This document shows positions 1 through 62,064 of a DNA stretch of 64,000 nt, piece after piece. The notes beneath the pieces were generated by a model. It was given only the letters and a program-made list of their open reading frames with translations. It did no database searches and had not been told where the DNA came from. The stretch spans positions 62,001 to 126,000 of the IMG/VR virus record IMGVR_UViG_3300042922_001182; one strand, 5' to 3'. Every line of letters begins with the position of its first letter. Position 1 is the first letter of the stretch. A program made the translations under genes and the position numbers.

Positions 1-296
1 CCCAGGACGGCCGCTCCAAGCGCACGCCCATCACGGAGTACCCCGTGCAGGAGCGCGGCGGCTTCGGCCGCATCGCCACCCAGCTCCAGGAGAACGACCT
101 CCTGATCAAGGCGCTCATCGTCAAGGAGGAGGACATCATGTTCATTAGCTCCGAGAAGATGGCCCGCGTCCCCGCAGAAGAGATCAAGATCTACCTGCGT
201 CCCACCTACGGCATCAAGGCGGTCAGCCTGGACGAGGGCGCGTACCTCGTCGACGTGGTCCGCATCGACGCCGATGAGACCTCGGAAGAGGTCTAG
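1..296 (+). CDS. gyrA: DNA gyrase/topoisomerase II subunit A, C-terminal beta-pinwheel (5' partial)
   Basis: The frame is open from the window edge and reads DGRSKRTPITEYPVQERGGFG and RPTYGIKAVSL, matching GyrA CTD blade repeats (GKRT..EYP.Q.RGGKG; R.T.GV..I.L). Confidence 0.8.
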   Translation, partial: QDGRSKRTPITEYPVQERGGFGRIATQLQENDLLIKALIVKEEDIMFISSEKMARVPAEEIKIYLRPTYGIKAVSLDEGAYLVDVVRIDADETSEEV

Positions 297-381
297 CGAG
301 ACAACTGAACAGACGCCGGGAGACCGGCTGTACGGAGCCGGGGGTGCGAGCCCCCGGCCTACCAAGAAAGGAACAACGACA

Positions 382-1020
382 ATGCCGTCTGAGCACAGGA
401 GGCTCTCTGCCAGGGAGATCGGAGAGGGGATCGAGGTCCAGCGTTTGCGGGTCTACGGCCTCTACAACCACCAGGGCGCGATCCCTCCTGAAACGTCGAA
501 GAAGATCCACGAGGACCTGAAGGGGCTCTTCCCGACCACCAAGGTCAAGAGCTTCTCCACCCTCGGTTCCGCTGACAAGATGAAGTACCTGGAGTGGCTG
601 AAGGAACAGCCCTCGTCCGGGGAAGAAGACAAGGGAAAGGAAGCGCAAGAGATGACCCAGAACAAGGGGCAGGAGTCCGGAGAGGTCACGGTGGTCCCCA
701 ACGACCGCTCCAAGGTGATCGTCATCCTGGGCACGGAGCTGGCCGAGCGACGGGAAGAGGTGAACTCCCTCCGTCTCATGCTCAAGGAGCGTGACTCGGA
801 GATCGGCTACATGTCGACCCAGATCGTCCAGAAGCTCAAGGAGGACAACGAGTACAAGGACCTCCTCATCGAGGAGCAGAAGGCCGAGATCGAGGCCCTC
901 AAGGAGAAGCTGAAGGAGTTCGAGCAGGTTCCCTCCCCCAAGTTGGACAAGGAGGAGAAGGAAGTGCTTGAAAAATTGCAGTTCAGGGTTGAAGGGGGTG
1001 GTACCGCATCGGCCGCTTGA
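382..1020 (+). CDS. Coiled-coil protein, paralog of the N-terminal part of 1543..2379
   Basis: RBS AAAGGAA before ATG382; shares RLRVYG...K(V/L)KS(F/Y)..L...Y..WL..QP with 1543..2379; E/K-rich heptads. Confidence 0.75.
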   Translation: MPSEHRRLSAREIGEGIEVQRLRVYGLYNHQGAIPPETSKKIHEDLKGLFPTTKVKSFSTLGSADKMKYLEWLKEQPSSGEEDKGKEAQEMTQNKGQESGEVTVVPNDRSKVIVILGTELAERREEVNSLRLMLKERDSEIGYMSTQIVQKLKEDNEYKDLLIEEQKAEIEALKEKLKEFEQVPSPKLDKEEKEVLEKLQFRVEGGGTASAA

Positions 1021-1453
1021 CCCGGCGGCACTATCACTGTCCACGACCTGCGGAATCAGCGACGGAGCCCGCAAGACGAACCGCAAGATCGAGACCTTCT
1101 CCGTCTCGAAGAAGGCCCTGACGGCTATGGACGATGCCGAGAAGCGGCTTGCGGCCGTGTTCGGCCAGGACGCCGCCGATGAGATGATGGACGAGATCCT
1201 GCGTTGCATGAAGGACACCAACATGAAGGACCACAACGCGGTCAGGAAGGCGTTCCGCCTCTGCGCGGACGTGTTCATCAACCCCCGTGTCGGCGTGGCG
1301 CTCCGACGGGAGTCCTCCCTGTACCACACCCTGGGCGGTACCCACTACTACAAGAAGGACCCGATCCGGATCGTCTACCGTGCCAACGGCCCGGTGGTGA
1401 CCCTGGTCAAGGTGGGCATGCGGAACGACGTCTACGAAGACGTGGCTATGTAG
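968..1453 (+). CDS. RelE/ParE-like domain protein (true start uncertain; possibly a frameshifted continuation of 382..1020)
   Basis: C-terminus IRIVYRANGPVVTLVKVGMRNDVY fits the RelE pattern RI.Y....V..+.+G.R.DVY and aligns with the C-terminal half of 1543..2379. Confidence 0.6.
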   Translation: MKNCSSGLKGVVPHRPLDPAALSLSTTCGISDGARKTNRKIETFSVSKKALTAMDDAEKRLAAVFGQDAADEMMDEILRCMKDTNMKDHNAVRKAFRLCADVFINPRVGVALRRESSLYHTLGGTHYYKKDPIRIVYRANGPVVTLVKVGMRNDVYEDVAM

Positions 1454-1462
1454 TAATCAGCT

Positions 1463-1471
1463 ACATATTAT
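1463..1471 (+). promoter_or_regulatory. Early-type phage promoter motif ACATATTAT
   Basis: AT-rich intergenic motif repeated at 11564, 16793 and 35905; followed by a hairpin at 1478-1507. Confidence 0.55.
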
Positions 1472-1542
1472 TCACTTGTCGGAAGGGGGCTCACGCCCTC
1501 TTCCGGCGTCAGCTAAAGACTTACCGGAACACGAGGTCCCCG

Positions 1543-2379
1543 ATGAACATCGAAAACGAGAGGCTCAGGGTCTACGGGCCCGACTTCCAGCGTGACAAGG
1601 GCGTCCGACGCCAGATGATGCTGGACATGCAGCAGAACGTCGAAGGCGCCAAGGCACTGAAGAGCTACGGCAACCTCACATTCAAGCGGTTGAACGACTA
1701 CTACCGCTGGCTCCAGGCGCAGCCCGACTTCGGGACGCCCAAGGAGCCGCCCGCTCCGCCCCTTCGGCTCTCCGCCATCCGGAGGGCAAGCCGGGCCCGT
1801 CGGGGGGCCGCCCTGACCGCCACTCTCCGCGAGGAGGTGGCCCAGCTCAAGGGGGAGATCAACACCCTGCTCGACGACGTGGAGATCCGCGACATGGAGA
1901 TCGAGGAGCTGAAGGACAACTTGGTCGCAATCCAGGCCGAGCTGGTCCAGCACCAGATGACCACCAACGGGAACACCCACCAGGTCAGCCACCGCCTGGC
2001 CGTCTCCATCTCCAAGGCCCCGCGCCTCCTGGTCGGGCAAGCCGAGATGCTGGCCGCCGACCTAGTGGCCGCCTTCCAAGGGGACGAGGAGCGGGCTGCC
2101 GACGTCCTGGACAACATCATCGAGCGCTCCACCGAGAAGCTCAGGGATCACCAGTGGCAGCAGGAGGCTATGAGCCTCTGCATGGAGGTCTTCATGAACC
2201 CCTACACGGCCGGGAAGAAGCTAGGGCTCCCCTGCGAGCTGCACGACGTCACCGGCGCAACCCACACTGCGGACAGGCGCAAGATACGGGCCCTCTACAG
2301 CATCCACGAGGGCGTTCCCAACTTCCGCCGGATAGGCTTCCGCAAGGACGTCTACCGTGGAACGCAACACACCAACTGA
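1543..2379 (+). CDS. N-terminal RLRVYG domain + coiled coil + C-terminal RelE/ParE-like domain
   Basis: RBS GAGGT before ATG1543; C-terminus KIRALYSIHEGVPNFRRIGFRKDVY. Confidence 0.65.
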   Translation: MNIENERLRVYGPDFQRDKGVRRQMMLDMQQNVEGAKALKSYGNLTFKRLNDYYRWLQAQPDFGTPKEPPAPPLRLSAIRRASRARRGAALTATLREEVAQLKGEINTLLDDVEIRDMEIEELKDNLVAIQAELVQHQMTTNGNTHQVSHRLAVSISKAPRLLVGQAEMLAADLVAAFQGDEERAADVLDNIIERSTEKLRDHQWQQEAMSLCMEVFMNPYTAGKKLGLPCELHDVTGATHTADRRKIRALYSIHEGVPNFRRIGFRKDVYRGTQHTN

Positions 2380-2389
2380 GGAGTTTCAA

Positions 2390-2986
2390 ATGGACAAGAG
2401 GTTCTTCATCAGCTCTATCTATCACGACAGCCTACGCAACATCGAGGTCGGGACCGAGGTCATGTGCCCCGTCGGCATGAACCGCGCCACCGTCGCCGGG
2501 CGCATCCAGGTCGAGAACGCCGTCCAGTGGGGCAACATGGCCGAGTTCCTCGCCACCGCCCCCCAACACATCGCGGTCGATGGGACGGACAGCGACTTCC
2601 ACGAGGTCACCATGGTCGGCAGCATATGGTATGCCCTGCGGGTCGGCAACCAGTGGATGGGGAGCGACCTGCTCGTCCATGCCAGCGCCGTCCGCCTGCT
2701 CGTGGACCCAGTTCTTGGGCTCGGGGACAAGGTTTCCTGGAACTCCGAGGACCTGGGCCTCAGCGTGGACGACCTGGGGATGGTGTCGGCCATCATGGAC
2801 CTGCTGAGGGCCCCGGACTACCACAGGGTCCGCCTGGCCCTGGCCAAGTACCTCGGACCGGCCTTCAGCGCCGAGTCCATCCGCCAGATGATGTTCAAGG
2901 ACCGCTACTGGTACCTCGTTGAGCACCAACAGGGCAAGCACTTCTACGCCGAGAGCACGCTCTCCCGCGAACCGATGTTCTACTAG
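2390..2986 (+). CDS. Hypothetical protein
   Basis: GAGGAG RBS, GC3-biased codons. Confidence 0.75.
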   Translation: MDKRFFISSIYHDSLRNIEVGTEVMCPVGMNRATVAGRIQVENAVQWGNMAEFLATAPQHIAVDGTDSDFHEVTMVGSIWYALRVGNQWMGSDLLVHASAVRLLVDPVLGLGDKVSWNSEDLGLSVDDLGMVSAIMDLLRAPDYHRVRLALAKYLGPAFSAESIRQMMFKDRYWYLVEHQQGKHFYAESTLSREPMFY

Positions 2987-2998
2987 GAGAATACGAAC

Positions 2999-3328
2999 TT
3001 GGAAGAGAAAGACTTTCGCTACTCCCCCGATTCCGACTTCAAGCGGCTTAAGGGAAGCCTGGAGCTGCACGTACTCGGAAAATCCAAGGAGATCCACATC
3101 GTCACGGTCTCTGACCAGGACGGCTTCCAGTTCCTCGTCACCTGCGAGGCCGGACAGGTCCGACCTGGCGCCCTCGTGGAGATGGAGGGGACCTTCGGCG
3201 TCTGCGCCGACCTCTACATCGTCGAGTCCACCCCCACCGGAATCACCCTGCCCAACGGCATCACCGTCCACACCACCGAGGCCCAGAACAGGTCCGGCGC
3301 GTGGGACGAGATGCTCACCGGCGACTAG
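2999..3328 (+). CDS. Hypothetical protein
   Basis: AGGAG RBS with TTG start; codon bias. Confidence 0.7.
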   Translation: MEEKDFRYSPDSDFKRLKGSLELHVLGKSKEIHIVTVSDQDGFQFLVTCEAGQVRPGALVEMEGTFGVCADLYIVESTPTGITLPNGITVHTTEAQNRSGAWDEMLTGD

Positions 3329-3357
3329 CCACTACTAAGAGAAAGGAAACACGAACA

Positions 3358-4017
3358 ATGTCGCGCAAAACCTACATCGGCTTCTTCATCGCCCTCTTCA
3401 TCACCCTCTTCTGCGATGCCTCCTTCGCCTGGACCGGTGCGCCCCCGCAGAAGGCCAAGCCCGACTATGAGTCCGTCACGTCCAACCCCATCCAGTCGCA
3501 GGTGGGTGGCCTGGTCATGCAGGCCTCCGACACCGACATGATCTACACGGCCGCCGACTACGCCTTCTCCAAGGTGGGCAAGCAGGGCACCCCCGAGCAG
3601 TTCGCCAAGGAGTACGCCAAGGCCAAGGCCCACCTGACGGCGGTCGCCTTCAGCGCGGCCTTCGTCGTCGCGATGGCCGAGGAGGAGAAGCCCACGGACC
3701 CCACGTCCACCGTCTACGCCCAGGCCATGCGGAACGGGATCTCGTCGGTCGCCGACGCCATGTCCGACATGTACGACGACTCCAGCGAGATCCTGGCCCT
3801 GAAGCGCCAGAAGCCGTCCGACAAGTTCGTCGAGCGCTACAACAAGGCGCGTATCGCCAAGAACCGCGCCTGGGAGACCACGGGCGTCCAGCCCCAGGCG
3901 ATGGCCGGTAGCCACATGTACGCCCGCGTCTACGCCGCCATCCTGGAGGACTACACGAAGGCGTACTACGACGGCGGCCTCCGGGTAGCGAAGATCATGC
4001 TCAAGCGCGGGTACTAG
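3358..4017 (+). CDS. Putative secreted protein with signal peptide
   Basis: MSRKTYIGFFIALFITLFCDASFA-W has a basic N-region, hydrophobic core and small-residue cleavage site; AAAGGAA RBS. Confidence 0.7.
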   Translation: MSRKTYIGFFIALFITLFCDASFAWTGAPPQKAKPDYESVTSNPIQSQVGGLVMQASDTDMIYTAADYAFSKVGKQGTPEQFAKEYAKAKAHLTAVAFSAAFVVAMAEEEKPTDPTSTVYAQAMRNGISSVADAMSDMYDDSSEILALKRQKPSDKFVERYNKARIAKNRAWETTGVQPQAMAGSHMYARVYAAILEDYTKAYYDGGLRVAKIMLKRGY

Positions 4018-4018
4018 G

Positions 4019-4834
4019 TTGAGGACGCTTGAGAGCGTATTCGCCGGGCACAAGGGCCACGGGGGTCTGTACGACGCCGGTAAGCTCACAGAGGAGGAGA
4101 TGGAGTCGTCGGAGCTCTGCGAGGCCCTCTGGCGCATGGCCGAGATCTCCAAGGCCGCCGTGCGCCTCTACTCCTCGGACGCCGGTCAGAAGGACCTGAT
4201 CGATGCCTTCCAGGTGTTCGCCTCGGACTCCTGGGAGGTATCCATGGCCATGAAGCGCAACCTCCTACGCTCGTACTTCCACCGCATCAGGGCCGAGAAG
4301 ACGCCGGACCCGGCGAGGGTCCTCTTCGACAGGGTGCCGTTGGAGTTCGACGACGGGTACGCGGTCTACCCGGCGGTCAACATCGACGACCTCCAGCTGC
4401 TCGGCAGCAAGTACGTCAAGCGTCCCAGGATGTTCACCAGGTTCTCGTCGGAGCTAGAGGCCATCCCCGACACCCACCTCGTCCTGGCCGAGCCCCTCGA
4501 CGAGGAGGAGCAGGAGATCCTGACGGAGGCCGAGCGGATCGCCGAGTCAGGAACGTCCATGGCGCTCGTGGCCTTCGGCCCCCCTGGGAAGGGGCGGGAG
4601 GAAGTGATCACGATATCGGTATCCAACCTGATGGACTCCAGACAGAGGCTGGAAGAGTCGTACGACCGTTGCAAGCAGATCCTATCATGGGAGATCGCCT
4701 CCCGGCTCCACCTCGGACGGGACCCCGTAGGGGTCGGCGACCTTGAGGACGGAAGGCACGCGCTGGTGTGCCGGTGCACCGTCGAATCAAAGGGACTGAC
4801 CTTCACTGCAAAGAGGAAGGTTATCGACTTCTAA
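4019..4834 (+). CDS. Hypothetical protein
   Basis: Long ORF abutting the upstream gene; start uncertain. Confidence 0.65.
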   Translation: MRTLESVFAGHKGHGGLYDAGKLTEEEMESSELCEALWRMAEISKAAVRLYSSDAGQKDLIDAFQVFASDSWEVSMAMKRNLLRSYFHRIRAEKTPDPARVLFDRVPLEFDDGYAVYPAVNIDDLQLLGSKYVKRPRMFTRFSSELEAIPDTHLVLAEPLDEEEQEILTEAERIAESGTSMALVAFGPPGKGREEVITISVSNLMDSRQRLEESYDRCKQILSWEIASRLHLGRDPVGVGDLEDGRHALVCRCTVESKGLTFTAKRKVIDF

Positions 4835-4835
4835 G

Positions 4836-4891
4836 GGACCAGCCACGCCGAGAGGCGAGGCTGGTCCGCTTGGTTCGCCCTTGATTTTTTT
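4836..4891 (+). terminator. Probable intrinsic terminator
   Basis: GGACCAGCC...GGCTGGTCC hairpin with a T-run at 4885-4891. Confidence 0.45.
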
Positions 4892-4914
4892 CTGCGTTCC
4901 CTGACAGCCTGGCA

Positions 4915-4926
4915 AACAATCCGATA
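4915..4926 (+). promoter_or_regulatory. AR9-type late promoter AACA-atccga-TA
   Basis: Exact AACA-N6-TA about 30 nt upstream of ATG4957. Confidence 0.65.
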
Positions 4927-4956
4927 TATTCGGAGAGAAATGGAGGCCCGAAGGGA

Positions 4957-6132
4957 ATGGCTTCAAAGGAAGGGGCGAACGCCCTAAAGGAAATAGGGGG
5001 GCCGCTGTCGGCCTCCCTCGCCAACAAGGACAACAGCGCCAGACTGAAGCAGGCGGTTAGGTCGTACGTGGACGCGCACTCCAAGGTGCTCTTGGCGTCC
5101 CACCCGGGTAACCGCCTCTACTTCAGGGAGGCCGACGAGGACGCGCTCTTCAAGGCTGCGGGAGTCAGCCGCGAGGACGTGGACCTGGTCATCAAGAGGT
5201 ACAAGCTGGCCGACAGCACCTGGAGGATCCTCAACAGGGCCTTCTACTGGGCTGGGGCGCTGGCCGTCAGGCACTACCTGGTGTCCAAGGACGAGGAGGG
5301 GGCGCAGCACGCGCTCATCTACCTCGTCCTTCCCATGTACGCGTCTCTCCAGTTCAAGTACTGGAAGCACGAGCCCTCGGGCCACCTGGAGGCCGTGATG
5401 GAGTACACGGTCAACAACCTGAGCAACAAGTTCAAGCTCAAGGAGATGCGGACGATCATCGCCACCCTCCAGTACACCGCCAACTCGACGCTGGAGAAGT
5501 ACAAGGACGGCATCATCAAGGGCGACGACGAGGAGCTCCGCTACTTCCTGTCGCAGCTCTGGATCCGCATCAACGGGTTCCTCCAGAGCGTCGCCAACGA
5601 GTTCTACTCTAACGTGGAGAAGGGCAACCACCTCTACATCGAGAAGGAGCCCGGCGAGGACAGCTTCCGCGAGGTCGACAACGTGTCGATGCTCGTGGCC
5701 AGGCTCTCCGAGTCCAGCTTCAACAGGGCGGTGACCGGCGGCGTGGACACCAGGACGGCCACCGCCGCTTCCACCATCTCCGGGGTCAGCACCTCGGCGA
5801 TCAGGTCGGCGCTGGAGAAGATCAACAGCGAGAAGTCGGCGGAGGTCAAGGAACTGATCACGCTGACCCTCCAGATGTACTTCTCCGACGGCAAGCGGCA
5901 ACCGGACACCGTGGGGACCAACCAGTTCTTGGTGGAGTCCATCAAGAACCTGACCAAGAGCAACACGAAGGAGGAGGCCGTCCTTAGGACAAAGGACATC
6001 CTCGACGACATGCTGCTCACGACGAGCGAGAAGTACAACTCCTCCGAGAGACCGGCCACCAGGGCCAACTTCCGGAAGGCCATCTACATCTACTACGTCA
6101 TTCTGATCCAGCAGACCTACATGGGGAACTAG
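4957..6132 (+). CDS. Jumbo-phage late protein of unknown function (helical)
   Basis: 391-aa ORF with strong codon bias; first gene after a late-type promoter. Confidence 0.75.
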   Translation: MASKEGANALKEIGGPLSASLANKDNSARLKQAVRSYVDAHSKVLLASHPGNRLYFREADEDALFKAAGVSREDVDLVIKRYKLADSTWRILNRAFYWAGALAVRHYLVSKDEEGAQHALIYLVLPMYASLQFKYWKHEPSGHLEAVMEYTVNNLSNKFKLKEMRTIIATLQYTANSTLEKYKDGIIKGDDEELRYFLSQLWIRINGFLQSVANEFYSNVEKGNHLYIEKEPGEDSFREVDNVSMLVARLSESSFNRAVTGGVDTRTATAASTISGVSTSAIRSALEKINSEKSAEVKELITLTLQMYFSDGKRQPDTVGTNQFLVESIKNLTKSNTKEEAVLRTKDILDDMLLTTSEKYNSSERPATRANFRKAIYIYYVILIQQTYMGN

Positions 6133-11563: not shown

Positions 11564-11573
11564 CACATATTAT
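11564..11573 (+). promoter_or_regulatory. Early-type motif CACATATTAT
   Basis: Exact copy of 16793 and 35905. Confidence 0.55.
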
Positions 11574-11652
11574 GAATCGGGACTACAACCGCCGGGAAAC
11601 CCTGGCAAGACCCGGCAGACAGCTAAACGTTTACAGAAAGGAAGGCTTAGCC

Positions 11653-13590
11653 TTGCACGACAGGATCGACATCGAGGCCTACCGCAACACCGACCGCTTC
11701 CTTGGGGAGGAGGTCCTCTTCCCCTTCGTGAGGAGCACCGACGGCTCGCGAGAGCTGATGGCCTCGTCCCAGGTCCACCAGGCGCTCGTCCTGACCAACG
11801 GTGAGTTCCCCCGCGTCTTCACCGGGTACGAGAACCAGGTGGGGAAGTACAGCTCCGCCTACCTCCGCGCCGAGCAGGAGCTCAAGATTCTCGAAGTCAT
11901 CGGGAAGAACCCGTACAACGCGCTCATCGTCTACGAGGACGAGGAGGGGACCATCGGCGTCATCTGGCGGAAGGAGTGCGAGAGCCTCTCCGAGCACTTC
12001 GGCTACCAGTACGACAACACCTACTTGGACGGGAAGTGGGAGGGCGACACGATCGCCAAGGGGGACGTCATCCGGCGGGGGACCGCCTACGACGAGGAGA
12101 TGAACTTCTCCTTCGGAACCAACCTCAGGGCGGTCTACATCCCCTGGGACGGAATGACCTTCGAGGACGCTATCGTCATCAGCGAGAGCACGTCCAAGAA
12201 GCTTGAGACCTCCTTGGTGGAGGTCGTCACGATCAACATGAACACCAACGACCTGGCCCTCAACCTCTACGGGGACGAGGATCCCAGCGGCTACAAGTCG
12301 TTCCCCGACATCGGCGAGGAGGTCAAGAACGGCATCCTCATGGCCCGTCGCCGCATCAACTACGAGTCCGCCCTTGTGGACCTGAGCACCAACCTCCTGA
12401 CCCAGGTCAACCCCAGTCGGGACACGGTGTTCTACTGCAACGGCACCGTGGTGGACATCGAGATCTTCAACAACGACGACGTCAACCGCCTGGAGAAGTA
12501 CGACTACAACGCCCAGATGCTCAAGTACCTGGCCGTGAACATGGAGTTCTACCGCGACGTGGACAGGGTCCTCGGCGCGTACATCAACGGCGGTCGCTCC
12601 TACACGGAGGACGCCGCCGCCGCCTACCGCCGCGCCCGGGACATCTGCAAGGATGGCGAGGAGCGCATCCGCTGGCGGCAGAACAAGAACGACTTCGAGT
12701 CCTACGTCATCCGGTTCACCCTGCTGCACAAGACCACGGCCAAGCCCGGGTCGAAGCTGGCGAACCGCTACGGCGGCAAGGGCGTCATCTCGCTCATCCT
12801 CCCCGACGACCAGATGCCGGTCAACGAGCACGGCGAGCGGGCCGAGATCATCCTCAGCCCTCTTGGCGTCACCAACCGCCTCAACCCGTCCCAGCTGATC
12901 GAGCAGGAGCTCAACTTCGTGGCGGACCACATCATGCGGGAGGCCAGGAAGGCGCCCGACACCATGACGGCGTGGGGTCTAATCCAGGACCTGCTCATCC
13001 AGGTCAGCCCCACCCAGGCGTCGGCCATGGCCAGCCACCTGTACAAGGAGGACATGGAGAGCTTCGTCAAGTCCATCCTGGACGACAAGCTCTACATCCA
13101 CCAGGCGCCGTTCTGGGGGAACCTGGACCTCGGCGGCCTGATCGAGCTGTACACCAAATACCCGTGGATCAAGCCCTACAAGATGAGCTGCTCCGAGAAG
13201 CCGCTGATCATGGGCGACATCTACTTCATGCTCCTGAAGCACGAGCCGATGACGAAGTTCTCGGTTCGCTCCACCAGCACCGTGAGCAACCGTGGCACCC
13301 CCTCCAAGAGCAGCCGCTACAAGGAGCACCAGCAGCCGTTCAGCCACACGCCGATCAAGATCGGCGAGATGGAGACCTTCAACATGTTCGCCACCGGCAA
13401 CTTCGAGGAGGTCCTCCGCATGCTCAACCTCTACTCCTCCAACCCGGGGGACAGAGAGCACCTCGCAAATGTTCTCCTCAAGACGAACATCTTCGACAGC
13501 AAGCAGGTAGATTCGCTCGGCGGCGAATCCAGCGTCAAGTCTATCATGGACGTACTGCTCACCAGCGCCGGTCTCCGGCTTACCGATTAG
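11653..13590 (+). CDS. RNA polymerase beta subunit, C-terminal half (probably non-virion RNAP)
   Basis: DGSRELMASSQVHQA, GMTFEDAIVISE, GSKLANRYGGKGVIS, IILSPLGVTNRLNPSQL, IKIGEME. The TTG11653 start is preferred (AAGGAAGG RBS) because ATG11572 lies inside the promoter motif. Confidence 0.9.
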   Translation: MHDRIDIEAYRNTDRFLGEEVLFPFVRSTDGSRELMASSQVHQALVLTNGEFPRVFTGYENQVGKYSSAYLRAEQELKILEVIGKNPYNALIVYEDEEGTIGVIWRKECESLSEHFGYQYDNTYLDGKWEGDTIAKGDVIRRGTAYDEEMNFSFGTNLRAVYIPWDGMTFEDAIVISESTSKKLETSLVEVVTINMNTNDLALNLYGDEDPSGYKSFPDIGEEVKNGILMARRRINYESALVDLSTNLLTQVNPSRDTVFYCNGTVVDIEIFNNDDVNRLEKYDYNAQMLKYLAVNMEFYRDVDRVLGAYINGGRSYTEDAAAAYRRARDICKDGEERIRWRQNKNDFESYVIRFTLLHKTTAKPGSKLANRYGGKGVISLILPDDQMPVNEHGERAEIILSPLGVTNRLNPSQLIEQELNFVADHIMREARKAPDTMTAWGLIQDLLIQVSPTQASAMASHLYKEDMESFVKSILDDKLYIHQAPFWGNLDLGGLIELYTKYPWIKPYKMSCSEKPLIMGDIYFMLLKHEPMTKFSVRSTSTVSNRGTPSKSSRYKEHQQPFSHTPIKIGEMETFNMFATGNFEEVLRMLNLYSSNPGDREHLANVLLKTNIFDSKQVDSLGGESSVKSIMDVLLTSAGLRLTD

Positions 13591-16792: not shown

Positions 16793-16802
16793 CACATATT
16801 AT
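16793..16802 (+). promoter_or_regulatory. Early-type motif CACATATTAT overlapping hairpin 16799-16832
   Basis: Exact motif; TTATCCGAAAGACGC / GCGTCTTTCGGATAA inverted repeat. Confidence 0.55.
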
Positions 16803-16864
16803 CCGAAAGACGCGTGTGCGTCTTTCGGATAACTAACTTTTCTCTCTCGAAAGGAGATACGCGG

Positions 16865-30321: not shown

Positions 30322-30395
30322 GCCTTCGTAGCTCAGCTGGACAGAGCGGGTCCGTCCTAAGGACAAGGTCGGGGGTTCGAATCCCTCCGGGGGCG
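30322..30395 (+). tRNA. tRNA-Arg (anticodon CCT), CCA not encoded
   Basis: Acceptor GCCTTCG/CGGGGGC, D-arm GCTC/GAGC, anticodon loop GT-CCT-AA, T-loop GGTTCGAATCC. Confidence 0.88.
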
Positions 30396-30438
30396 CTCGC
30401 CGAAAGGCGCTAACGGCAAAGAGAAGGAGAGAAGCAAC

Positions 30439-35904: not shown

Positions 35905-35914
35905 CACATATTAT
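35905..35914 (+). promoter_or_regulatory. Early-type motif CACATATTAT heading the accessory gene array
   Basis: Exact motif immediately after a terminator. Confidence 0.6.
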
Positions 35915-35959
35915 GCCCTTGACAACGGTTTGCTGACTACGGAAAGAGGTATTTCCAAC

Positions 35960-53084: not shown

Positions 53085-53873
53085 ATGACCGAAACGCACA
53101 ACCCCATCACCCCCATCGCCTCCTGCTACGTCCACCGCGACGGCAGGTTCCTGATGCAGCTCCACGCCAAGGAGGGCGTGTGGTTCCCGCCGGGGGGCAA
53201 GATCGACACCAAGGCCAACGAGCTGCCCTACGAGGCCGCCGCCCGCGAGACCCTGGAGGAGACCGGCATCAGCGTCTTCCTCCCCGACCCCACCGTCATG
53301 GACGGCAACACGGTCGACCTGCCCCTCCCCGTCGCCATGCAGACGGAGACCTACATGGGCAAGGACGGCGTGGAGCGGGTGTACCTGAACCACGTCTTCG
53401 TGGCCGAGTGCCCCGAGGGCGCGGAGTACAGCGGCAACCAGGAGAGCCTGGACCACGGCTGGTTCACCCCCGCCGAGATGATGCTCCTGCCCAAGTTCCC
53501 CCTCGCCATCCAGAAGCGGGCCGCGTCCATGCTGGTCTTCGTCGAGACGATGAAGTCGGCGGGCATGTGGCCCTACAACAGGCCCAAGACGCTCCTGGAG
53601 GTCTTCGCGGAGCAGACGGTCCCGTACCAGCCGCTCCCCGAGGGCGGCCTGGGCCGGATCGCCAGCAACATCCTGAAGAGCGTGGGCGAGGAGTCGGACG
53701 AGTTCGAGATCCCCAGGGCCTGGACCGAGGGAGGCGAGCACCGCTTGGACATCGACCGCATTTCACAGACCTTCCACGTACCCTCGGAGATGATCCGATC
53801 CGACGAGGAAACCAAGAACTTCATCGGCGCGACCGAGCACGTCGTCCCGATGACCTTCAAGGACCGTGCTTAG
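53085..53873 (+). CDS. Nudix hydrolase
   Basis: WFPPGGK.......E...EAAARETLEETGI Nudix box. Confidence 0.85.
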   Translation: MTETHNPITPIASCYVHRDGRFLMQLHAKEGVWFPPGGKIDTKANELPYEAAARETLEETGISVFLPDPTVMDGNTVDLPLPVAMQTETYMGKDGVERVYLNHVFVAECPEGAEYSGNQESLDHGWFTPAEMMLLPKFPLAIQKRAASMLVFVETMKSAGMWPYNRPKTLLEVFAEQTVPYQPLPEGGLGRIASNILKSVGEESDEFEIPRAWTEGGEHRLDIDRISQTFHVPSEMIRSDEETKNFIGATEHVVPMTFKDRA

Positions 53874-54243
53874 GATCTACACCGGGGAGGTGGGCAAGTA
53901 CCGGGGGCCCCACGGGCTCGACGTCACCGCCAGGAGCGGAGACCCGGTGTTCGCCCCCTCCTGGGAGATCGTCATGGGCAGCAAGTCCAGGAGGATCACC
54001 AGGGAGCGGTACATAGCGGAGTACGAACGCCTCCTGAGGGGGCAGTTCAAGGCCAACCTGGGGCGGGTGGAGGAGGTCCTCTCCCAGCCCTCGGTCGTCC
54101 TCCTCTGCTACTGCGACTGGAGGAAGGAGTTCTGCCACAGGCGCCATCTGGCGACGGTGCTCAAGCGCTTGGCGGACAGGGTCGGCATCGGAGCCGAGAT
54201 CATGGGGGAGGTCTCAAGGACCAACAGGCCCCCGGAGGAATGA
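53866..54243 (+). CDS. DUF488-like protein
   Basis: FAPSW...Y...Y...VVLLCYC....FCHRRHLA. Confidence 0.6.
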   Translation: MLRIYTGEVGKYRGPHGLDVTARSGDPVFAPSWEIVMGSKSRRITRERYIAEYERLLRGQFKANLGRVEEVLSQPSVVLLCYCDWRKEFCHRRHLATVLKRLADRVGIGAEIMGEVSRTNRPPEE

Positions 54244-54461
54244 CGATTGCACCACGCTATGGTGAGGCTCCCCAACCGGGAGGAGATGCGGCTCCTGGAG
54301 GAGTACACCGGCCTCAAGAGCATCCTGATCAGGGTGGGGGACTTCGCGTCCTGCGGGGTCGTGATGGCCCTATGGGAGCTGGCCCGCATGTGGCTGGGCT
54401 AGAGCCGATTCGGTGGGAAGGGGCCTCGCGGCTCCTTCCCGCCTCCCTCTTACCACGGTAG

Positions 54462-54473
54462 AACAACCACATA
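54462..54473 (+). promoter_or_regulatory. Late promoter AACA-accaca-TA
   Basis: Exact motif about 45 nt upstream of the portal gene. Confidence 0.65.
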
Positions 54474-54517
54474 TCCTAAAGACAGCAACGCGGCGAGGCC
54501 GCTAGGAGGCGAAGCAG

Positions 54518-56887
54518 ATGGCAGAGAAAGACGAGGGCAAGGGTCTCCTTGCCCAGCTCAGGAGCATCGGGGCGTACACCACTGGCCTGATGTTCGGCAG
54601 CAGCGAGGAGCGACGCGCCGAGGACAGGGCCAAGAGGGCCGACGTCAAGGACCTGGTGGCCCGGGTCAGCTCCAGGTACCAGAGCACCACCGGCCCGGAC
54701 GTGGTGGAGTTCCTCGCCCAGGCCGAGCTCCAGGCCGACGACGACAAGGGGAAGGGCGGCAAGAAGAAGAGCGGCAAGAAGCTCCTTGAGATCAACAGCA
54801 TCGTCGAGGGGGCCGACCAGAAGATCCTGAGCAACATGATGTTCATGGAGATGGACCGCATCACCGGCTACGACACGTACGCCATGATCCACAAGTACAT
54901 CCCGCAGCTCTCGGACGCCATCAAGAACTACCGGGACAGCATCCTCTCCCCGGACGACTTCACCAAGGACACCTTCACCGTCCACTACGAGGCGTCGGAG
55001 GTCGAGGCCGTGAAGCTCGCCGTCGAGAGGCTGGACCAGATCACCGAGCGCTACGGCCTGGAGGAGAAGAGCAAGAAGATCATCGACGACACCCTGATCC
55101 TCGGCGACCAGTTCGTGGCGACCCTCTCCCTGGATCGGGAGCTGCAGAGGCTGCTGCTCGAAGGCGCTGACCCCAAGAACCTGATGATCCTCTCCAACGA
55201 GCAGATCGGCAGGGACCTCGGCGGCTTCCTGACGGAGTCCGAGTCCGCCCTGACGGAGGAGGAGATCACCGACCTCGGCATCCTGATCGAGGAGGAGGGC
55301 AAGGAGGACCCAGCTCTGAACGAGCTGAACCGTAGCCTCATGCTCATGATCAACGAGAACCTCAGCTTCGGCGACTCGAAGACCATCCTCCGGGAGAAGG
55401 CCGAGACCGAGATGATCATGAACAACGCCACCGGCGGTAGCGCCCTGGAGGCGGCCAAGGAGCGCGAGGCGGCCGAGAAGCAGAAGGCCATCGACGGCTG
55501 GAAGATGGTGAACGGCTCCGTCGTCAAGGTGCTGGACCCCCGGCGGGTCGTCAAGCTCCAGGTGGACGACGTCTGCTACGGCTACTACTACGTGGAGAAG
55601 GCCAGCAACACCGACTTCGGCAAGAAGCCCGCCGGTCGGCACGGGTCCGACGCCTTCACCAGCGCCTTCACCGGGGCCGGGAACGACGAGGCCGCCAAGA
55701 AGACCAAGTCCGACATGGTGGCCGACATCTTCATCAAGCGCATCGGCAAGAGGGTCAACAACGAGCTGTTGGCCAAGAACCCCGAGTTCAAGACGATCAT
55801 GTACAACCTCCTGAAGCAGGGCGCCCTGATGAAGGAGCAGATGAAGATCACCTACCTCCGTCCGGACGAGGTCGAGCACTTCATGATCAACGAGGAGGAC
55901 GGCTACGGCGTCTCCATCTACCGGGACATCCTCTTCACGGCCAAGCTGTACCTGGCGGTGCTGACCACCACGCTCATGAACAAGCTGGTGCGCGGCCCCG
56001 ACAAGCGCGTCTTCTACGTGGAGGTCGGCCTGGACAACGACACCGAGGGCGTCATCCAGCAGTTCATCCGCGACGTCAAGAGCCGCGACATCAAGATGAA
56101 CGACCTGAAGGACATCAACACCATCCTCAACAACGTCGGCATCCACAACGACTACTTCATCCCCATGATCAACAACGAGCGGCCCGTGGACATCGAGACC
56201 ATGTCCGGCTCGGAGGCGACCCTGGACAACGAGTTCCTTGAGTACCTGCGCAAGACCATGATCTCCGGGATCGGCGTCCCCTCCGCGTTCCTCAACTACT
56301 CGGAGGACGTGGAGTTCGCCCGCTCGCTGGCGATGCAGAACGGCCGATTCGTCCGCTCGATCGTCGTCCTCCAGAAGTGCTTCGGCAAGGGCTTCACCCG
56401 GCTCTACCGCACGCTCTACCGCAACGAGTACCCCAGCGAGGCCGAGAAGCGCGAAAGCAAGCCCACTGCGACCCCCAAGACCAAGGGGGAGGGCGAGGGC
56501 AAGCCCGCCCCCTTGCTGCTGGGAGAGGCCGCGCCTAAGCCCAAGGGCAAGGCCGAGGACCGCGCCCAGACCTACGAGATCGAGGCGCGGCTCATCGAGG
56601 TCCGCTTCCCCTCCCCGGCCTCGCTCAACACCACCAACATGACCGAGCAGGTCAACAACAGCCAGACCGTCGTCGACTTCATCGTGGCTACCCTCGCGGG
56701 GGACGACACGCCGGAGGATGCCAAGCGGGAGCTCAAGCTCCAGGTGACCAAGGACCTGGTGACCACGGTCGACTGGGCCAGGTACGAGAACATGGCGAAG
56801 GACGCCAGGATCAAGGCCAAGAGGGACGCCCTCCTCAGCAACGAGGAGGACCCGGCGTCCAAGGGCGGAGGCCTGGCCGACGTCTAA
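54518..56887 (+). CDS. Portal protein (T4 gp20-like, jumbo-phage type)
   Basis: RGPDKRVFYVEVG, DYFIP....PVDIET, EYLRK.MISGIGVP resemble gp20 (RAPERRVFYIDVG, DYWLP, Y..KLY.AL.VP). Confidence 0.8.
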   Translation: MAEKDEGKGLLAQLRSIGAYTTGLMFGSSEERRAEDRAKRADVKDLVARVSSRYQSTTGPDVVEFLAQAELQADDDKGKGGKKKSGKKLLEINSIVEGADQKILSNMMFMEMDRITGYDTYAMIHKYIPQLSDAIKNYRDSILSPDDFTKDTFTVHYEASEVEAVKLAVERLDQITERYGLEEKSKKIIDDTLILGDQFVATLSLDRELQRLLLEGADPKNLMILSNEQIGRDLGGFLTESESALTEEEITDLGILIEEEGKEDPALNELNRSLMLMINENLSFGDSKTILREKAETEMIMNNATGGSALEAAKEREAAEKQKAIDGWKMVNGSVVKVLDPRRVVKLQVDDVCYGYYYVEKASNTDFGKKPAGRHGSDAFTSAFTGAGNDEAAKKTKSDMVADIFIKRIGKRVNNELLAKNPEFKTIMYNLLKQGALMKEQMKITYLRPDEVEHFMINEEDGYGVSIYRDILFTAKLYLAVLTTTLMNKLVRGPDKRVFYVEVGLDNDTEGVIQQFIRDVKSRDIKMNDLKDINTILNNVGIHNDYFIPMINNERPVDIETMSGSEATLDNEFLEYLRKTMISGIGVPSAFLNYSEDVEFARSLAMQNGRFVRSIVVLQKCFGKGFTRLYRTLYRNEYPSEAEKRESKPTATPKTKGEGEGKPAPLLLGEAAPKPKGKAEDRAQTYEIEARLIEVRFPSPASLNTTNMTEQVNNSQTVVDFIVATLAGDDTPEDAKRELKLQVTKDLVTTVDWARYENMAKDARIKAKRDALLSNEEDPASKGGGLADV

Positions 56888-57771: not shown

Positions 57772-60483
57772 TTACTTGACGATGATGTCGTTGACGACAC
57801 GCTCGATCACGTTGTTGAAGACCAGCTCGGTCTTAACACGCGTCACCTTGCGCTTCTTCTCGTAGTCGGAAGCGTACACCGTGCCATTGGCAACCTTGCA
57901 GGCGCGGTTGTCGACCCACTGGGAGAGCTCGCCGTTCACATCCGCCTGGAAGGCGTTGTAGGTCGAGGCGTCGCTGAACTCGAACTGGTAGTTCTCGCCC
58001 ATGCGCTCGATACGGCGGAGGATCCTCAGGAGGACGCGGACGTTGTTCTGGTCCGACAGGGCGGAGACCACCTTCTGCATGGTCAGCTGGGAGCCGATCT
58101 TGGTGGTGGTGTTGTCCTGCTCGGCGTAGTTGATCTGGAGCTTGTACAGCTCCTCCTTCCACGTCTCGGTCGGGTTGAACGACATGCGCTTGAAGCCGTC
58201 GAGGACGCCGCGACGCAGGCCAGCCAGCGGGAACTGGATGCCGTTGGCGGTGTCGTTGGCGGGGATCATGCGCGACAGGAAGTAGGTCATGGTGACCTTG
58301 ATGTCGCCGCCGGTGAACTCCGCGTCCTCGACCACGAAGTCCTGGGTGTAGAGCGAGCCGAAGAAGCTCGACGCCTGCGCCTGGTTCTTGCGGAAGTCGA
58401 CGGCCTTCGCCGCGTTGGGCGTAAAGCCGGTGTCCAGGATCGCCATGTGGTCGCCACGGATGTTCCGGGCCAGCTCCAGCATGGCGGTCTTGACGGGCGT
58501 GGGGTAGTTGGCGTCGATCGTCAGGTCGATCGGGACCAGCTTCTTGTTGGTGACGTTCTGGTCGAGCGTGCCGCTGTACGCGGACACCAGCAGCGAGGTC
58601 GCCGTGGTGGTGCGCAGAGTGGGGTTCGACTCGTCCAGGTCGCCGTCGGTACCGCTACCGAGAGGCGCGAGGTTGTCGATGTTGTAGATGTCGACGCCGT
58701 AGGTGTTGCCGAGCTTGACCGTGGCCTCCGAGCGCGCCTCGGTGAGGACGCCAGCGGCGGCGGTCAGGACGGCGACCTTGTCGGCATCGGACGCCTTCGC
58801 GACGCCGACGGCGGCGGTCAGGACGGTGTCCAGGTGACCGTAGGCCGTCTCCATCGAGGTGATGACGTCGTTGGCAGCATCGACCTTGGCCTCGGTGAGG
58901 TTGGTGTTGATGGCGGCCTGGGCGGCGGTCAGGGCAGCAGCGGCGGCGGAGGTCGCCGTGTTGAGCTTGTTCGCAGCGGACGAGGTCGTCGCGATGGCGT
59001 ACGCAGCCAGGGCCGCATCGGCCGCCGTGATGGCGGTGTCCAGGGTGGTCTCGGTCGCGTCCGCCTCGGTCGAGATAGCCAGCACGGTGGTGCGGACTTC
59101 CTTGGCCAGGGCGACCGCGTCCTTGGCGGCCTGGTGACGGGTCACCGGGTCGGCGCCGACGTTGGCGGCGGTGATGGCAGCCTGGGACGCGGTGACCCGC
59201 GAGGTCAGGCCCAGGGTGGCCATCTCCACGACGTTGGCGGTGCGCGAGGCGGTGGTGTAGCCCTCGATCGCCACCAGAGCCGCGAGGACGGCGACGGTGG
59301 CACCCTGGACGGCGCGGCCCAGGTTGTAGGCCTGAAGCTGCTCGGTGCGCTTGGCGCCCGAAGCGTAGGCCAGGAGGGCCTCGGCAGCGAGCTTCTCGGC
59401 AGCTTCGCCGACGGCGGCGACCATGTCGGCCTTCAGCTTGAGGAAGGTGCCAGCGGTGGTGGGATCGCCCTTCGACGTGGTCAGGGCGGTCTTCAGCGCG
59501 GTGGCCTCGGTGTTGTAGGTACCGGCCTCGACCTTGTCCATCGCGTCTTCGATCGTCGCGATGGCGGTCAGGGCAGCGGCGTGGTCGGACACGCGCACGG
59601 CCTCGTCGGCGTTCACGATCGCGGCGACGGTGGAGCTGGAGACGTCGGCGAGCTTGGTGCCAGCGTGGATGGGATCCTCGCCGTCGACGTCGCGCTCGGT
59701 GACGGTCAGCAGGTCCAGCAGGGCCGGGTCGACGTCCGGGTTGATCGCAGCGCCGAGAGCGTTGTAGGCGTCCTCGTTGTAGAGGAACTCCATCTGCTCG
59801 GAGAAGTTCTCGAACACGTAGTCGATCGTCATCTTCTCGTTCGACTTCGACTTGGCGTCGGGCGAGAACGAGACGAGGAAGGGGCCCTCGACCGGGGTGA
59901 CGGTGCCGGTCTTGGAGACGCGGACAACGCTGGCCTCGTAGACGCGGAAGTCGTTGGTGTTGTCCAGGTCCGTGGTCAGACGGAGCTGCACACCCAGGTC
60001 GTTGTAGCCCTTGCCGCGACCCTTCGGGCGGAACGCGCCCAGCAGGTGGTGCTTGTAGCCGTCCACGGTGTCCGAGTGGACGCGCTTCAGCTCGGCTTCG
60101 AGCGCCTCGTGCGAGGTGTGGTTCACCGGGCTGTACATCAGCACCGGGCGGACCTGCAGCTTGCCGCTCTCCATCTTCGTCTGGACGTCCAGGATGACGT
60201 GAGCGAAACCGGCGTTCTCGGGCATGACGCGGAGGCCGAAGACCTCGCCGCCGGACTGCAGGAAGTTGCGAATGTTGTACATGGCCTGTCCGTGGCGGCG
60301 CATGTTGGGCTTGCCGTAGTGAAACTCGGCCTCGCTGGGGGTGGTAAGCCTGACCAGCGTGTTGTCGGGACCGATGTCCGACGTGAACGCGGTAAGCATC
60401 ACGGTCGACCCCGCCGCAGTCACGAAGATCACCGAGTCGTCGATGATCCGCGAGCTGATACTCGGGTGAAGATACTCTTCCAT
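57772..60483 (-). CDS. Contractile tail sheath protein with Ala/Thr-rich insertion
   Basis: YLHPSISSRIID, GP.N, YG.PN, LRVMPENA; C-terminal DANYP..VK, R.D..AILD, P.AG..RG, LYKLQINY, SALS..NNVRVL; GGAGG RBS before ATG60483. Confidence 0.85.
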   Translation of the reverse strand: MEEYLHPSISSRIIDDSVIFVTAAGSTVMLTAFTSDIGPDNTLVRLTTPSEAEFHYGKPNMRRHGQAMYNIRNFLQSGGEVFGLRVMPENAGFAHVILDVQTKMESGKLQVRPVLMYSPVNHTSHEALEAELKRVHSDTVDGYKHHLLGAFRPKGRGKGYNDLGVQLRLTTDLDNTNDFRVYEASVVRVSKTGTVTPVEGPFLVSFSPDAKSKSNEKMTIDYVFENFSEQMEFLYNEDAYNALGAAINPDVDPALLDLLTVTERDVDGEDPIHAGTKLADVSSSTVAAIVNADEAVRVSDHAAALTAIATIEDAMDKVEAGTYNTEATALKTALTTSKGDPTTAGTFLKLKADMVAAVGEAAEKLAAEALLAYASGAKRTEQLQAYNLGRAVQGATVAVLAALVAIEGYTTASRTANVVEMATLGLTSRVTASQAAITAANVGADPVTRHQAAKDAVALAKEVRTTVLAISTEADATETTLDTAITAADAALAAYAIATTSSAANKLNTATSAAAAALTAAQAAINTNLTEAKVDAANDVITSMETAYGHLDTVLTAAVGVAKASDADKVAVLTAAAGVLTEARSEATVKLGNTYGVDIYNIDNLAPLGSGTDGDLDESNPTLRTTTATSLLVSAYSGTLDQNVTNKKLVPIDLTIDANYPTPVKTAMLELARNIRGDHMAILDTGFTPNAAKAVDFRKNQAQASSFFGSLYTQDFVVEDAEFTGGDIKVTMTYFLSRMIPANDTANGIQFPLAGLRRGVLDGFKRMSFNPTETWKEELYKLQINYAEQDNTTTKIGSQLTMQKVVSALSDQNNVRVLLRILRRIERMGENYQFEFSDASTYNAFQADVNGELSQWVDNRACKVANGTVYASDYEKKRKVTRVKTELVFNNVIERVVNDIIVK

Positions 60484-60566
60484 CCTTTTTTCCTCCACTT
60501 CTGTTAGACGGGTCGCCTAAGGATTCAATCGAGCCATCTCATTGTGAGACCCATGGGAGCACTCTT

Positions 60567-60578
60567 TAATTGAATGTT
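60567..60578 (-). promoter_or_regulatory. Late promoter AACA-ttcaat-TA
   Basis: Exact motif upstream of the sheath gene. Confidence 0.65.
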
Positions 60579-60606
60579 TCAAGGTGATAGGAGGAAAGAG
60601 TACCTT

Positions 60607-61311
60607 TTAGTAGTGGAGCGTTCTCTCGATGGGCGAGGCAACCTCCTTGGCTCCGCTCTTCGTCCTTGCGACAGACGCGATGACGGACTGGTTCATGTCC
60701 TCGAAGCTCAGAGCCGCGAAGTTGGAGCTGAGAGCAGGAAGGCGCTTGAGGTTGACAGCCTTGTACGCCTTGCCATTCGAGCGGCGGTACGGAACGTTCA
60801 GGTTGCTAGCATCCCTGTAAAGCTCTGCGACGATGCTCTCCAAGACGGAGTTGGGGACCTCAAGATTGATCCCGTTGATCTCCATGCAGTCGTTGTAGAG
60901 CTTCATCACCCTCTCGTAGGGGATGGAGGCGGGGAGGTTGCCGCCGTGGAGGAGCTGGATGAACTTCTTGCCCGCATCGACGGACTTGGTGACGTTCAGG
61001 TTCTCCAGGAAGACGTCGCCGCGCTCCATCTGGAAGACGTGGACGGCGGTCTCGCCGGAGCCGGTGGTGTACTTGTCCTGGAAGCTGAGCATCGACTCGA
61101 TGGGCATGGCGAGGAGCTTGCGGGTGCCCTTACCGGCCGACTCCCTGGACGGGAAAACGGTGAACTCGAAGATGAAGAGAGTCCTGATCCTGTCGCCCAC
61201 CCACTCGGCGATGCCGTCCTGGAAGTAGCTCTCGGGGATCATGACCTCGATGTAGGGGGCGGCCACGATGAGGGAATCCTTCTGTTCGGTAAAGATCTTC
61301 TTGAAATCCAT
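60607..61311 (-). CDS. RNA polymerase beta' C-terminal fragment (probably virion RNAP small subunit)
   Basis: LESIVAELYRD...SSNFAALSFEDMNQSVIAS...SPIE aligns with RpoC HIEVIVRQM...ESFISAASFQETTRVLTEA. Confidence 0.6.
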   Translation of the reverse strand: MDFKKIFTEQKDSLIVAAPYIEVMIPESYFQDGIAEWVGDRIRTLFIFEFTVFPSRESAGKGTRKLLAMPIESMLSFQDKYTTGSGETAVHVFQMERGDVFLENLNVTKSVDAGKKFIQLLHGGNLPASIPYERVMKLYNDCMEINGINLEVPNSVLESIVAELYRDASNLNVPYRRSNGKAYKAVNLKRLPALSSNFAALSFEDMNQSVIASVARTKSGAKEVASPIERTLHY

Positions 61312-61368
61312 GCTATTGCCTCCTCGGCTTATGAAACGGGGGAACGCTGTGTGCGTTCCCCCTAATGC

Positions 61369-62043: not shown

Positions 62044-62064
62044 TTTCTCTCTTTCCTTCCTGTG

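Follow-up and report, generated by a model that had tools for sequence, protein, structure and literature searches.

We consider a 64,000-nucleotide stretch of viral DNA (hereafter the window), which corresponds to bases 62001-126000 of IMG/VR record IMGVR_UViG_3300042922_001182, a complete sequence of 238,984 bp that has direct terminal repeats. The 239-kb record was assembled from a soil metagenome and has a G+C content of about 62%. The phage carries the beta subunit of a multisubunit RNA polymerase, whose nearest relatives are those of the Bacillus jumbo phages PBS1 and AR9 (42% identity), followed by those of phiR1-37 and the Staphylococcus jumbo phages. It also encodes its own GyrB and GyrA, as identified by a Pfam search (GyrB domains found), with the full gyrA at genome positions 59816-62296 and gyrB about 4 kb upstream, at 53455-55842. 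Downstream of gyrA, at the left end of the window, lie three open reading frames (ORFs), denoted A, B and C (Table 1), which are the subject of this analysis; B and C encode a C-terminal domain that probably belongs to the RelE/ParE toxin superfamily.

The first-pass annotation of this DNA, made from the letters alone, described C on the one hand, and A plus B on the other, as tandem paralogs with an N-terminal domain, a coiled coil and a RelE/ParE-like C-terminus. The coordinates, the ORFs and the shared motif are as it described them, and the paralogy is confirmed. A (382-1017) aligns with the first ~65 residues of C at 27% identity (E 9e-5), an alignment that includes the RLRVYG and Y..WL..QP motifs, and 99 residues of B align with the C-terminus of C (31% identical, E 1e-11), DH, LC..VF.NP, G.TH, IR..Y and G.R.DVY being invariant between the two. 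The relationship can be seen in the DNA as well, where 1248-1285 and 2165-2202 are 76% identical and 1415-1435 and 2335-2355 are 81% identical. The middle parts of A and C cannot be aligned, yet each is a heptad coiled coil: the heptad periodicity of C residues 93-135 lies above that of 300 out of 300 shuffles, and that of A residues 110-150 above 294 out of 300. In the AlphaFold2 model, C residues 77-177 form one continuous helix, the part where its confidence is highest, and the matches of these proteins in Pfam are all sub-threshold and mostly to coiled-coil families. The locus thus holds the three-part architecture twice in tandem, fused in C and split in A/B. Profile and sequence searches of the 239-kb genome found no further copies of either domain.

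Table 1. Features at the gyrA-proximal end of the window (window positions).
Feature	Position	Strand	Description or basis
gyrA 3' end	1..296	+	Pfam DNA_topoisoIV E 1.6e-126, DNA_gyraseA_C
9-bp GC-rich hairpin, no U tract, gyrA-A spacer	337..358	+	fold of 297-381 z -4.3; 0/200 shuffles as good
ORF A	382..1020	+	212 residues; basic N-terminal domain plus acidic linker/coiled coil; no RelE-like part
A/B overlap	914..1017	+	both frames open; A ends GCU-UGA-C
ORF B	968..1453, called from TTG 989 (989..1453)	+	154 residues, public gene call P0002
ORF B parts	RelE/ParE-like domain ~1088-1441	+	basic linker, then RelE/ParE-like domain; family-profile and C alignments
Early-promoter-like motif CATATTAT-(6N)-G	1464..1478 (core 1464-1471)	+	predicted transcription start G1478
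13-14-bp GC-rich hairpin	1477..1508	+	fold of 1454-1542 z -4.0; 0/200 shuffles as good
ORF C	1543..2379	+	278 residues, public gene call P0001
C N-terminal domain	residues 1-64 (1543-1734)	+	alignment with A
C linker and coiled coil	residues ~77-177 (1771-2073), heptad core 93-135	+	heptad test, AlphaFold2
C RelE/ParE-like domain	residues ~151-272 (1993-2358)	+	B alignment, ESM Atlas

We examine the split copy in the light of this architecture. A is in frame 1 and B is in frame 2, and the G+C content at third codon positions (GC3) is 0.8-1.0 in the A frame up to ~975 and 0.83-0.97 in the B frame from ~1025 to the stop codon, so that the coding signal changes frame between ~975 and 1030. The possible starts of B are TTG 968, TTG 989 and GTG 998, while the first and only ATG, at 1127, lies inside the domain. 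Since the family profile and the C alignment put the opening strand of the domain (B, TFSVS; C, AVSIS) upstream of this ATG, B either starts at TTG 989 or GTG 998 or is reached from A. A and B were searched as separate sequences throughout. The protein encoded by A is acidic, with an isoelectric point (pI) of 5.3 (9.35 for residues 1-80 and 4.7 for residues 81-212), and B is basic (pI 9.3), a charge pattern that may be likened to that of antitoxin/toxin pairs. The reading that we prefer, although we put it a little short of an even chance, is that A and B are two translationally coupled genes.

It is possible, but unlikely, that A and B are instead a broken and decaying duplicate of a C-like gene, in which case only C, and perhaps a truncated A, would be functional. 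A and B read in sequence give the domain order of C, their frames are both open over 914-1017, a stretch with runs of A5 and G5, neither TTG 989 nor GTG 998 has a good Shine-Dalgarno sequence at normal spacing, and a start at the sole ATG would remove the first strand of the domain, all of which would suit a decaying gene. Against this, the B-frame GC3 stays high all the way to the stop codon, B retains every motif residue that it has in common with C, and overlapping antitoxin-toxin gene pairs coupled in translation are usual. The break between the two frames is also present in a contig that Logan assembled independently from the source run (same sample), which is identical over 1-3000 at a word depth of ~620 with no indels; an assembly slip is therefore highly unlikely as the origin of the split. 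A programmed +1 frameshift that joins A to B is improbable too: the RNA structure of the junction (914-1017) is nothing unusual (z -0.27) and no stimulator is seen downstream of it. An RF2-type stimulator was considered and rejected, as the AGGGGG run ends 16 nucleotides before the last sense codon, with no downstream structure. Such a distance is too far for the RF2-type mechanism.

We turn our attention to the C-terminal domain, the part that B and C have in common. The model of C in the ESM Atlas has a predicted local distance difference test (pLDDT) score of 0.71, and for residues 177-276 all of the family sets listed among the nearest models are ParE/RelE or "plasmid stabilisation" clusters, with template modelling (TM) scores of 0.57-0.75 (target-normalised) over 78-86 aligned residues. 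Comparing the language-model features of B (from ATG 1127) gives ParE, RelE and YoeB clusters at 0.91-0.92, with one clan accounting for nine of the ten best family-bearing matches, scores that fall in a range reached by 4-10% of shuffled proteins. When the profile of B and C is searched against 177,635 PDB sequences, the best match is the RelE-like toxin Rv2866 (PDB accession code: 3g5o_B, E 0.077), and the two align colinearly along the beta-sheet, beginning at the NP..G loop and ending with the terminal R-x-D-[IV]-Y (R-A-D-I-Y in Rv2866, R-x-D-V-Y in the phage). Against home-made PF05016 profiles, built with 22 members taken from five unrelated genomes, B scores 11.9-15.0 bits, colinear over nearly the whole model, and the score of 15.0, obtained with a 21-member profile, exceeds all of 3000 shuffles of B (maximum 10.7). 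In the reciprocal test, the profile of B and C scores the real family members higher than 200 shuffles of each of them (combined p 1.6e-5, Mann-Whitney p 0.0014). Because these five tests, weak but of different kinds, agree on the same superfamily, we consider it likely that the domain belongs to RelE/ParE, with a homology that lies at the detection limit.

A considerable set of results weighs against this assignment. The C-terminal ~100-120 residues do not reach the threshold of a curated family in Pfam, NCBIfam, PHROGs or PADLOC; the isolated domains match nothing in Pfam even at E up to 10, the searches of the other three collections give nothing relevant, and a scan of the whole phage genome with the PF05016 model at E up to 10 yields zero matches. 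Single-sequence searches of the PDB give no match, and C alone scores a non-significant 2 bits against the family profile. A profile-profile comparison with hhalign does find a colinear alignment of 82 columns, yet with P 0.007 and a probability of 5%; with 56 close RelE sequences of the E. coli type as the profile, it finds nothing. AlphaFold2, which has no usable alignments to work with, gives models that are too poor (pLDDT 55 for full-length C and 49 for the isolated domain); their order of helices and strands is compatible with the RelE/ParE fold, and Foldseek against the PDB returns noise with the full-length model. That fold has ~90 residues, in which a helical hairpin at the N-terminus packs on three or four antiparallel strands. 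The structural support is thus that of one predictor compared with other predicted models. The RelE/ParE-like C-terminus of the first-pass annotation accordingly stands on the convergence of weak tests and falls short at every curated threshold, and the evidence on its fold is likewise divided, with the neighbours in the ESM Atlas in its favour and no match from the AlphaFold2 models.

The likeness might, then, be one of chance or convergence, and the proteins orphan coiled-coil proteins that end in an unrelated small alpha/beta fold. Each line taken singly is weak (the E of 0.077, the 5% of hhalign, the language-model range that shuffled proteins also reach), the fold is not confirmed by AlphaFold2, and C on its own is not significant. 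Different kinds of test, however, give the same superfamily by colinear alignments of the whole domain and the shuffle controls were passed, which makes this explanation rather unlikely.

Given a RelE/ParE domain, the next question is whether it would cleave mRNA or poison gyrase. Mutagenesis of E. coli RelE has demonstrated that R61, R81 and Y87 are critical while K52 and K54 matter little (PMC2807027), and the RNase residues are missing from ParE toxins (PMC11980606). In both phage copies the Arg of IR..Y aligns with R61 of RelE, and the Arg and Tyr of G-x-R-x-D-V-Y align with R81 and Y87 in B and, via the B/C alignment, in C, the alignment underneath being weak in each case. The C-terminal endings (VGMRNDVY in B, IGFRKDVY in C) have the spacing of HRADIY in Rv2866. 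In the comparison set, the RelE-type members end in V-G-x-R-...-V-Y, whereas the ParE-type members lack the Arg/Tyr pair and have h-h-H/R-... at their ends, and none of the 14 ParE-type members has an ending like G-x-R-x-D-V-Y. The two best matches of the reciprocal test are both RelE-type. As putative counterparts of R61, R81 and Y87 occur in both copies and the nearest family members are RelE-type, an mRNA-cleaving RNase appears, on balance, to be distinctly likelier than a ParE-type gyrase poison.

Several observations speak against an RNase. Counterparts of K52 and K54 of RelE are not evident, and the pI of the isolated RelE-like domain is close to neutral (7.2-7.8). The ribosome-dependent RelE toxins are more basic than that. 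Through its helices, B scores 12.5 bits against a ParE-type sub-profile and 8.2 bits against a RelE-type one. The N-terminal extension of 150-180 residues might also obstruct entry into the ribosomal A site.

Some of these observations would also suit a domain that has no catalytic activity and instead acts, at the end of a coiled-coil stalk, as a binding or scaffold module, which might sequester a host factor or be an anti-defence decoy. Such a module could explain the extreme divergence that leaves every family threshold unreached, the neutral charge and the missing lysine counterparts, and non-catalytic domains of toxin fold are known in multidomain proteins, e.g., the PIN-like domain of PtuZ (PMC11980606). 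The residues at the RelE active-site positions (His, Arg, Arg, Asp and Tyr), however, are invariant between two copies that are ~30% identical, as they would be under selection for catalysis, and we regard a dead domain as improbable.

The first-pass annotation had proposed a ParE-type poison of the host gyrase, for which the position directly after the phage's gyrA was the argument. In this reading the domain would trap or inhibit the host gyrase, and the phage GyrA and GyrB would be insensitive to it. The proposal may appeal to the annotation of the fold neighbours as ParE or plasmid stabilisation proteins, to the higher score of B against the ParE-type sub-profile, to the near-neutral charge and to the phage gyrase gene immediately upstream. 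The Pfam ParE_toxin family, however, combines ribosome-dependent RNases with gyrase poisons (PMC11980606), so the names of the neighbours leave the type undecided, and the Arg/Arg/Tyr signature of the RelE type is kept in both copies. A ParD or ribbon-helix-helix (RHH) partner was not detected either, as PF03693 (ParD_antitoxin) and PF01402 (RHH_1) match nothing in the genome. The argument from position is not supported by the comparison with AR9. There the backbone is shared: gyrA (g044) is followed by small genes over ~3.7 kb and then by g052, with 36.7% identity to window 4957-6129. None of the AR9 genes between gyrA and g052 (g045-g051) has a relationship with A, B or C. The two right after gyrA, g045 and g046 (~160 residues), were considered as counterparts and rejected, since neither has a Pfam match or any relation to the other or to A, B and C. 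Over window 1-6132 as a whole, the flanks are conserved with AR9 while the intervening 3.7-4.6 kb has an entirely different gene content. As judged from this comparison, A, B and C sit in a variable accessory slot beside gyrA and not in a gyrase module; because AR9 fills the slot with unrelated genes, adjacency to gyrA says little about the target. We regard a gyrase poison as improbable.

For the expression of these genes, a promoter motif provides information. The 9-mer ACATATTAT occurs 12 times in the genome, against 0.19 expected, with 11 of the 12 on the + strand. CATATTAT has 14 sites, all of which have a G after six nucleotides and 12 of which lie 33-87 nucleotides upstream of a Shine-Dalgarno sequence and a start codon; in full, the motif is (C/A)ACATATTAT-(6N)-G. 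Its layout equals that of the AR9 early promoter, with the consensus AAATATATATTAT-(6N)-G+1, which is read by the virion RNA polymerase that the phage injects (PMC5312081). One copy begins 79 nucleotides upstream of C, whose ATG follows 65 nucleotides after the predicted start at G1478, and this AR9-type motif supports a phage origin and early expression. Upstream of A there is no such motif, the nearest copy being the one that precedes an ORF of 351 residues two genes before gyrA, and A and B are probably transcribed as part of the gyrA unit; the gyrA of AR9 is an early gene (PMC5312081).

The predicted start of the C transcript, G1478, is the first base of the 13-14-bp hairpin, and the fact that several hairpins begin at the predicted +1 of the motif suggests stem-loops at the 5' ends of early transcripts. 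Further strong GC-rich intergenic hairpins without U tracts are found at genome positions 58114, 78795 and 210021. The copies of the motif within the window, all on the + strand, are at 1464-1478, 11566-11580, 16795-16809 and 35907-35921. The opening ATG of ORF 11572..13590 (the RNA polymerase beta subunit, in the program-made list) falls inside the second of these, and the true start of this gene is probably the TTG 87 nucleotides downstream, which gives a protein of 645 residues.

Combining this information, the explanation that we favor, tentatively and as the best available one, though as a whole we would not give it an even chance, is a diverged RelE-type early mRNA nuclease carried on a coiled coil, in a fused and a split version. 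What we infer for the RNase activity, the target, the regulation and the biological role is the following. A, B and C would be lineage-specific early genes of an AR9/PBS1-like jumbo phage that encode, twice, a protein with a small, basic domain at the N-terminus, ~100 residues of heptad coiled coil and a highly diverged RelE-type (RNase) domain. The coiled coil would probably make the protein a dimer. C would be produced as a single polypeptide from its own early promoter, and the other copy as an acidic A and a basic B from overlapping ORFs. Early in infection, on or near the ribosome, the nuclease would cleave mRNA endonucleolytically, which may serve the shut-off of host mRNA or the turnover of early transcripts; during AR9 infection the overall host mRNA drops (PMC5312081). 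The role of the N-terminal half would be to tether the nuclease or else to restrain it in the manner of an antitoxin, in cis in C and in trans by the action of A on B. The first-pass annotation had likewise suggested a built-in regulatory domain, with host shut-off or superinfection exclusion as possible uses. A more elaborate version, in which a dimerising coiled coil links inhibitor and enzyme in nucleases that regulate themselves, and a +1 frameshift at the weak stop GCU-UGA-C sets the ratio of A (inhibitor alone) to A-B (complete enzyme) for a timed shut-off of host translation, is very improbable.

The N-terminal domain on which such a restraint would depend has ~65-80 residues and is basic (pI 9.35-9.5). 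Searches by sequence, profile, language-model features and ESM Atlas structure found no homologues of it, and its comparison with antitoxin families (Pfam, RHH_1, ParD_antitoxin) gave no match. The PDB matches of the N-terminal profile were rejected as a chance likeness to W..Q.PG of the antibody framework. A ribbon-helix-helix reading of RLRVYG with a G-x-S/T helix cap, similar to ParD, RelB or CopG, was set aside too, as it is a pattern seen by eye and the two antitoxin models match nothing.

Relatives of the proteins as a whole are just as scarce. A word-based search of 5.8 billion clustered proteins with C returns C itself and nothing more, and in an exhaustive search of 1.84 billion representative proteins with the profile of B and C the true matches are B and C. 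One extra match was rejected, an eukaryotic-looking protein of 1990 residues whose 16 assembly-like repeat copies resemble LC.EV..N by chance. A tblastn search of 50,697 phage records gave no match at E 0.01 or better, and pattern scans of IMG/VR with the domain profile and GyrA gave nothing. In a sediment metagenome from another study, two low-depth contigs of 151 nucleotides cover part of gene C (window 1634-1925) at ~97% identity, with three differences listed (L91M, one synonymous and N107S). A close relative of the phage therefore exists elsewhere.

As for the neighboring genes, four small ones lie between gyrB and gyrA, of which one matches DUF6011 and one weakly a CENP-B-type helix-turn-helix. 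On the 3' side of C there is a run of orphan genes (2390-2986, 2999-3328, 3301-4017 and 4019-4834); the product of 3301-4017 begins, from an internal Met, with a hydrophobic stretch that resembles a signal peptide or transmembrane segment (MSRKTYIGFFIALFITLF...), and it has no family match. Farther into the window there is a gene for tRNA-Arg (CCT) at 30322-30396.

The known systems can be compared with this locus at three levels. At the level of the domain, the phage proteins resemble E. coli RelE and M. tuberculosis RelG (Rv2866, 3g5o) in the predicted hairpin of two helices and sheet of three strands, in the weak but colinear sequence match and in the putative counterparts of R61, R81 and Y87, and Rv2866 in particular in the R-x-D-[IV]-Y spacing at the C-terminus. 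They differ in that the phage domain lies below the curated thresholds, has an extra helix and strand before the predicted hairpin and is joined to an N-terminal domain and coiled coil of 150-180 residues. Moreover, no recognisable antitoxin of the RelB, ParD or YefM type goes with the phage proteins, and their genes lie in the early region of a jumbo phage instead of an addiction module of a chromosome, plasmid or prophage. The ParE poisons (RK2 ParE, Caulobacter ParE1 and PfiT of prophage Pf4) have in common with them the superfamily fold, as predicted for the phage domain, and the Atlas neighbours are so annotated; ParE, however, is without the RNase residues (PMC11980606), whereas the phage copies keep Arg/Arg/Tyr and have no ParD partner that we could find.

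At the level of architecture, the closest analogues appear to be the genes in which an antitoxin is fused to a toxin of the RelE/ParE superfamily (ParD-ParE, YefM-YoeB etc.), of which 195 have been catalogued, with no description of a coiled coil or of a lytic-phage origin among them (Gerdes 2025, PMC11980606). In these, too, a single polypeptide begins with a non-toxin part and ends in a BECR domain. In the phage, by contrast, no known antitoxin domain is recognised in the N-terminal part, which is set apart from the RelE/ParE-like domain by a long coiled coil. The genes also reside in a phage and not in a defence island, and a fused and a split version are adjacent to each other. At the level of function, the closest analogue would be T4 RegB, an early phage RNase that inactivates early mRNAs and whose membership in the RelE superfamily was recognised by structure alone (PMC2807027). 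Both RegB and the phage proteins are early phage gene products with a RelE-superfamily fold (timing and fold both predicted here), and they differ in sequence, as no match was obtained in any phage record at E 0.01 or better. RegB is in addition a single-domain protein that is not known to contain a coiled coil.

The weight of this case is limited, as it consists of two copies in one uncultivated genome and 97%-identical fragments in one other metagenome, with the function being inferred. We have found no other example in which a domain of no known family, a long coiled coil and a toxin domain are combined, and the fused and split versions side by side constitute a natural experiment on how toxin domains are restrained. 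The case also illustrates how such domains drift below the detection of family models. If the RNase reading is true, a RelE-superfamily nuclease would serve a jumbo phage as an early effector, and it would join T4 RegB as evidence that phages have recruited the RelE fold for the control of mRNA.

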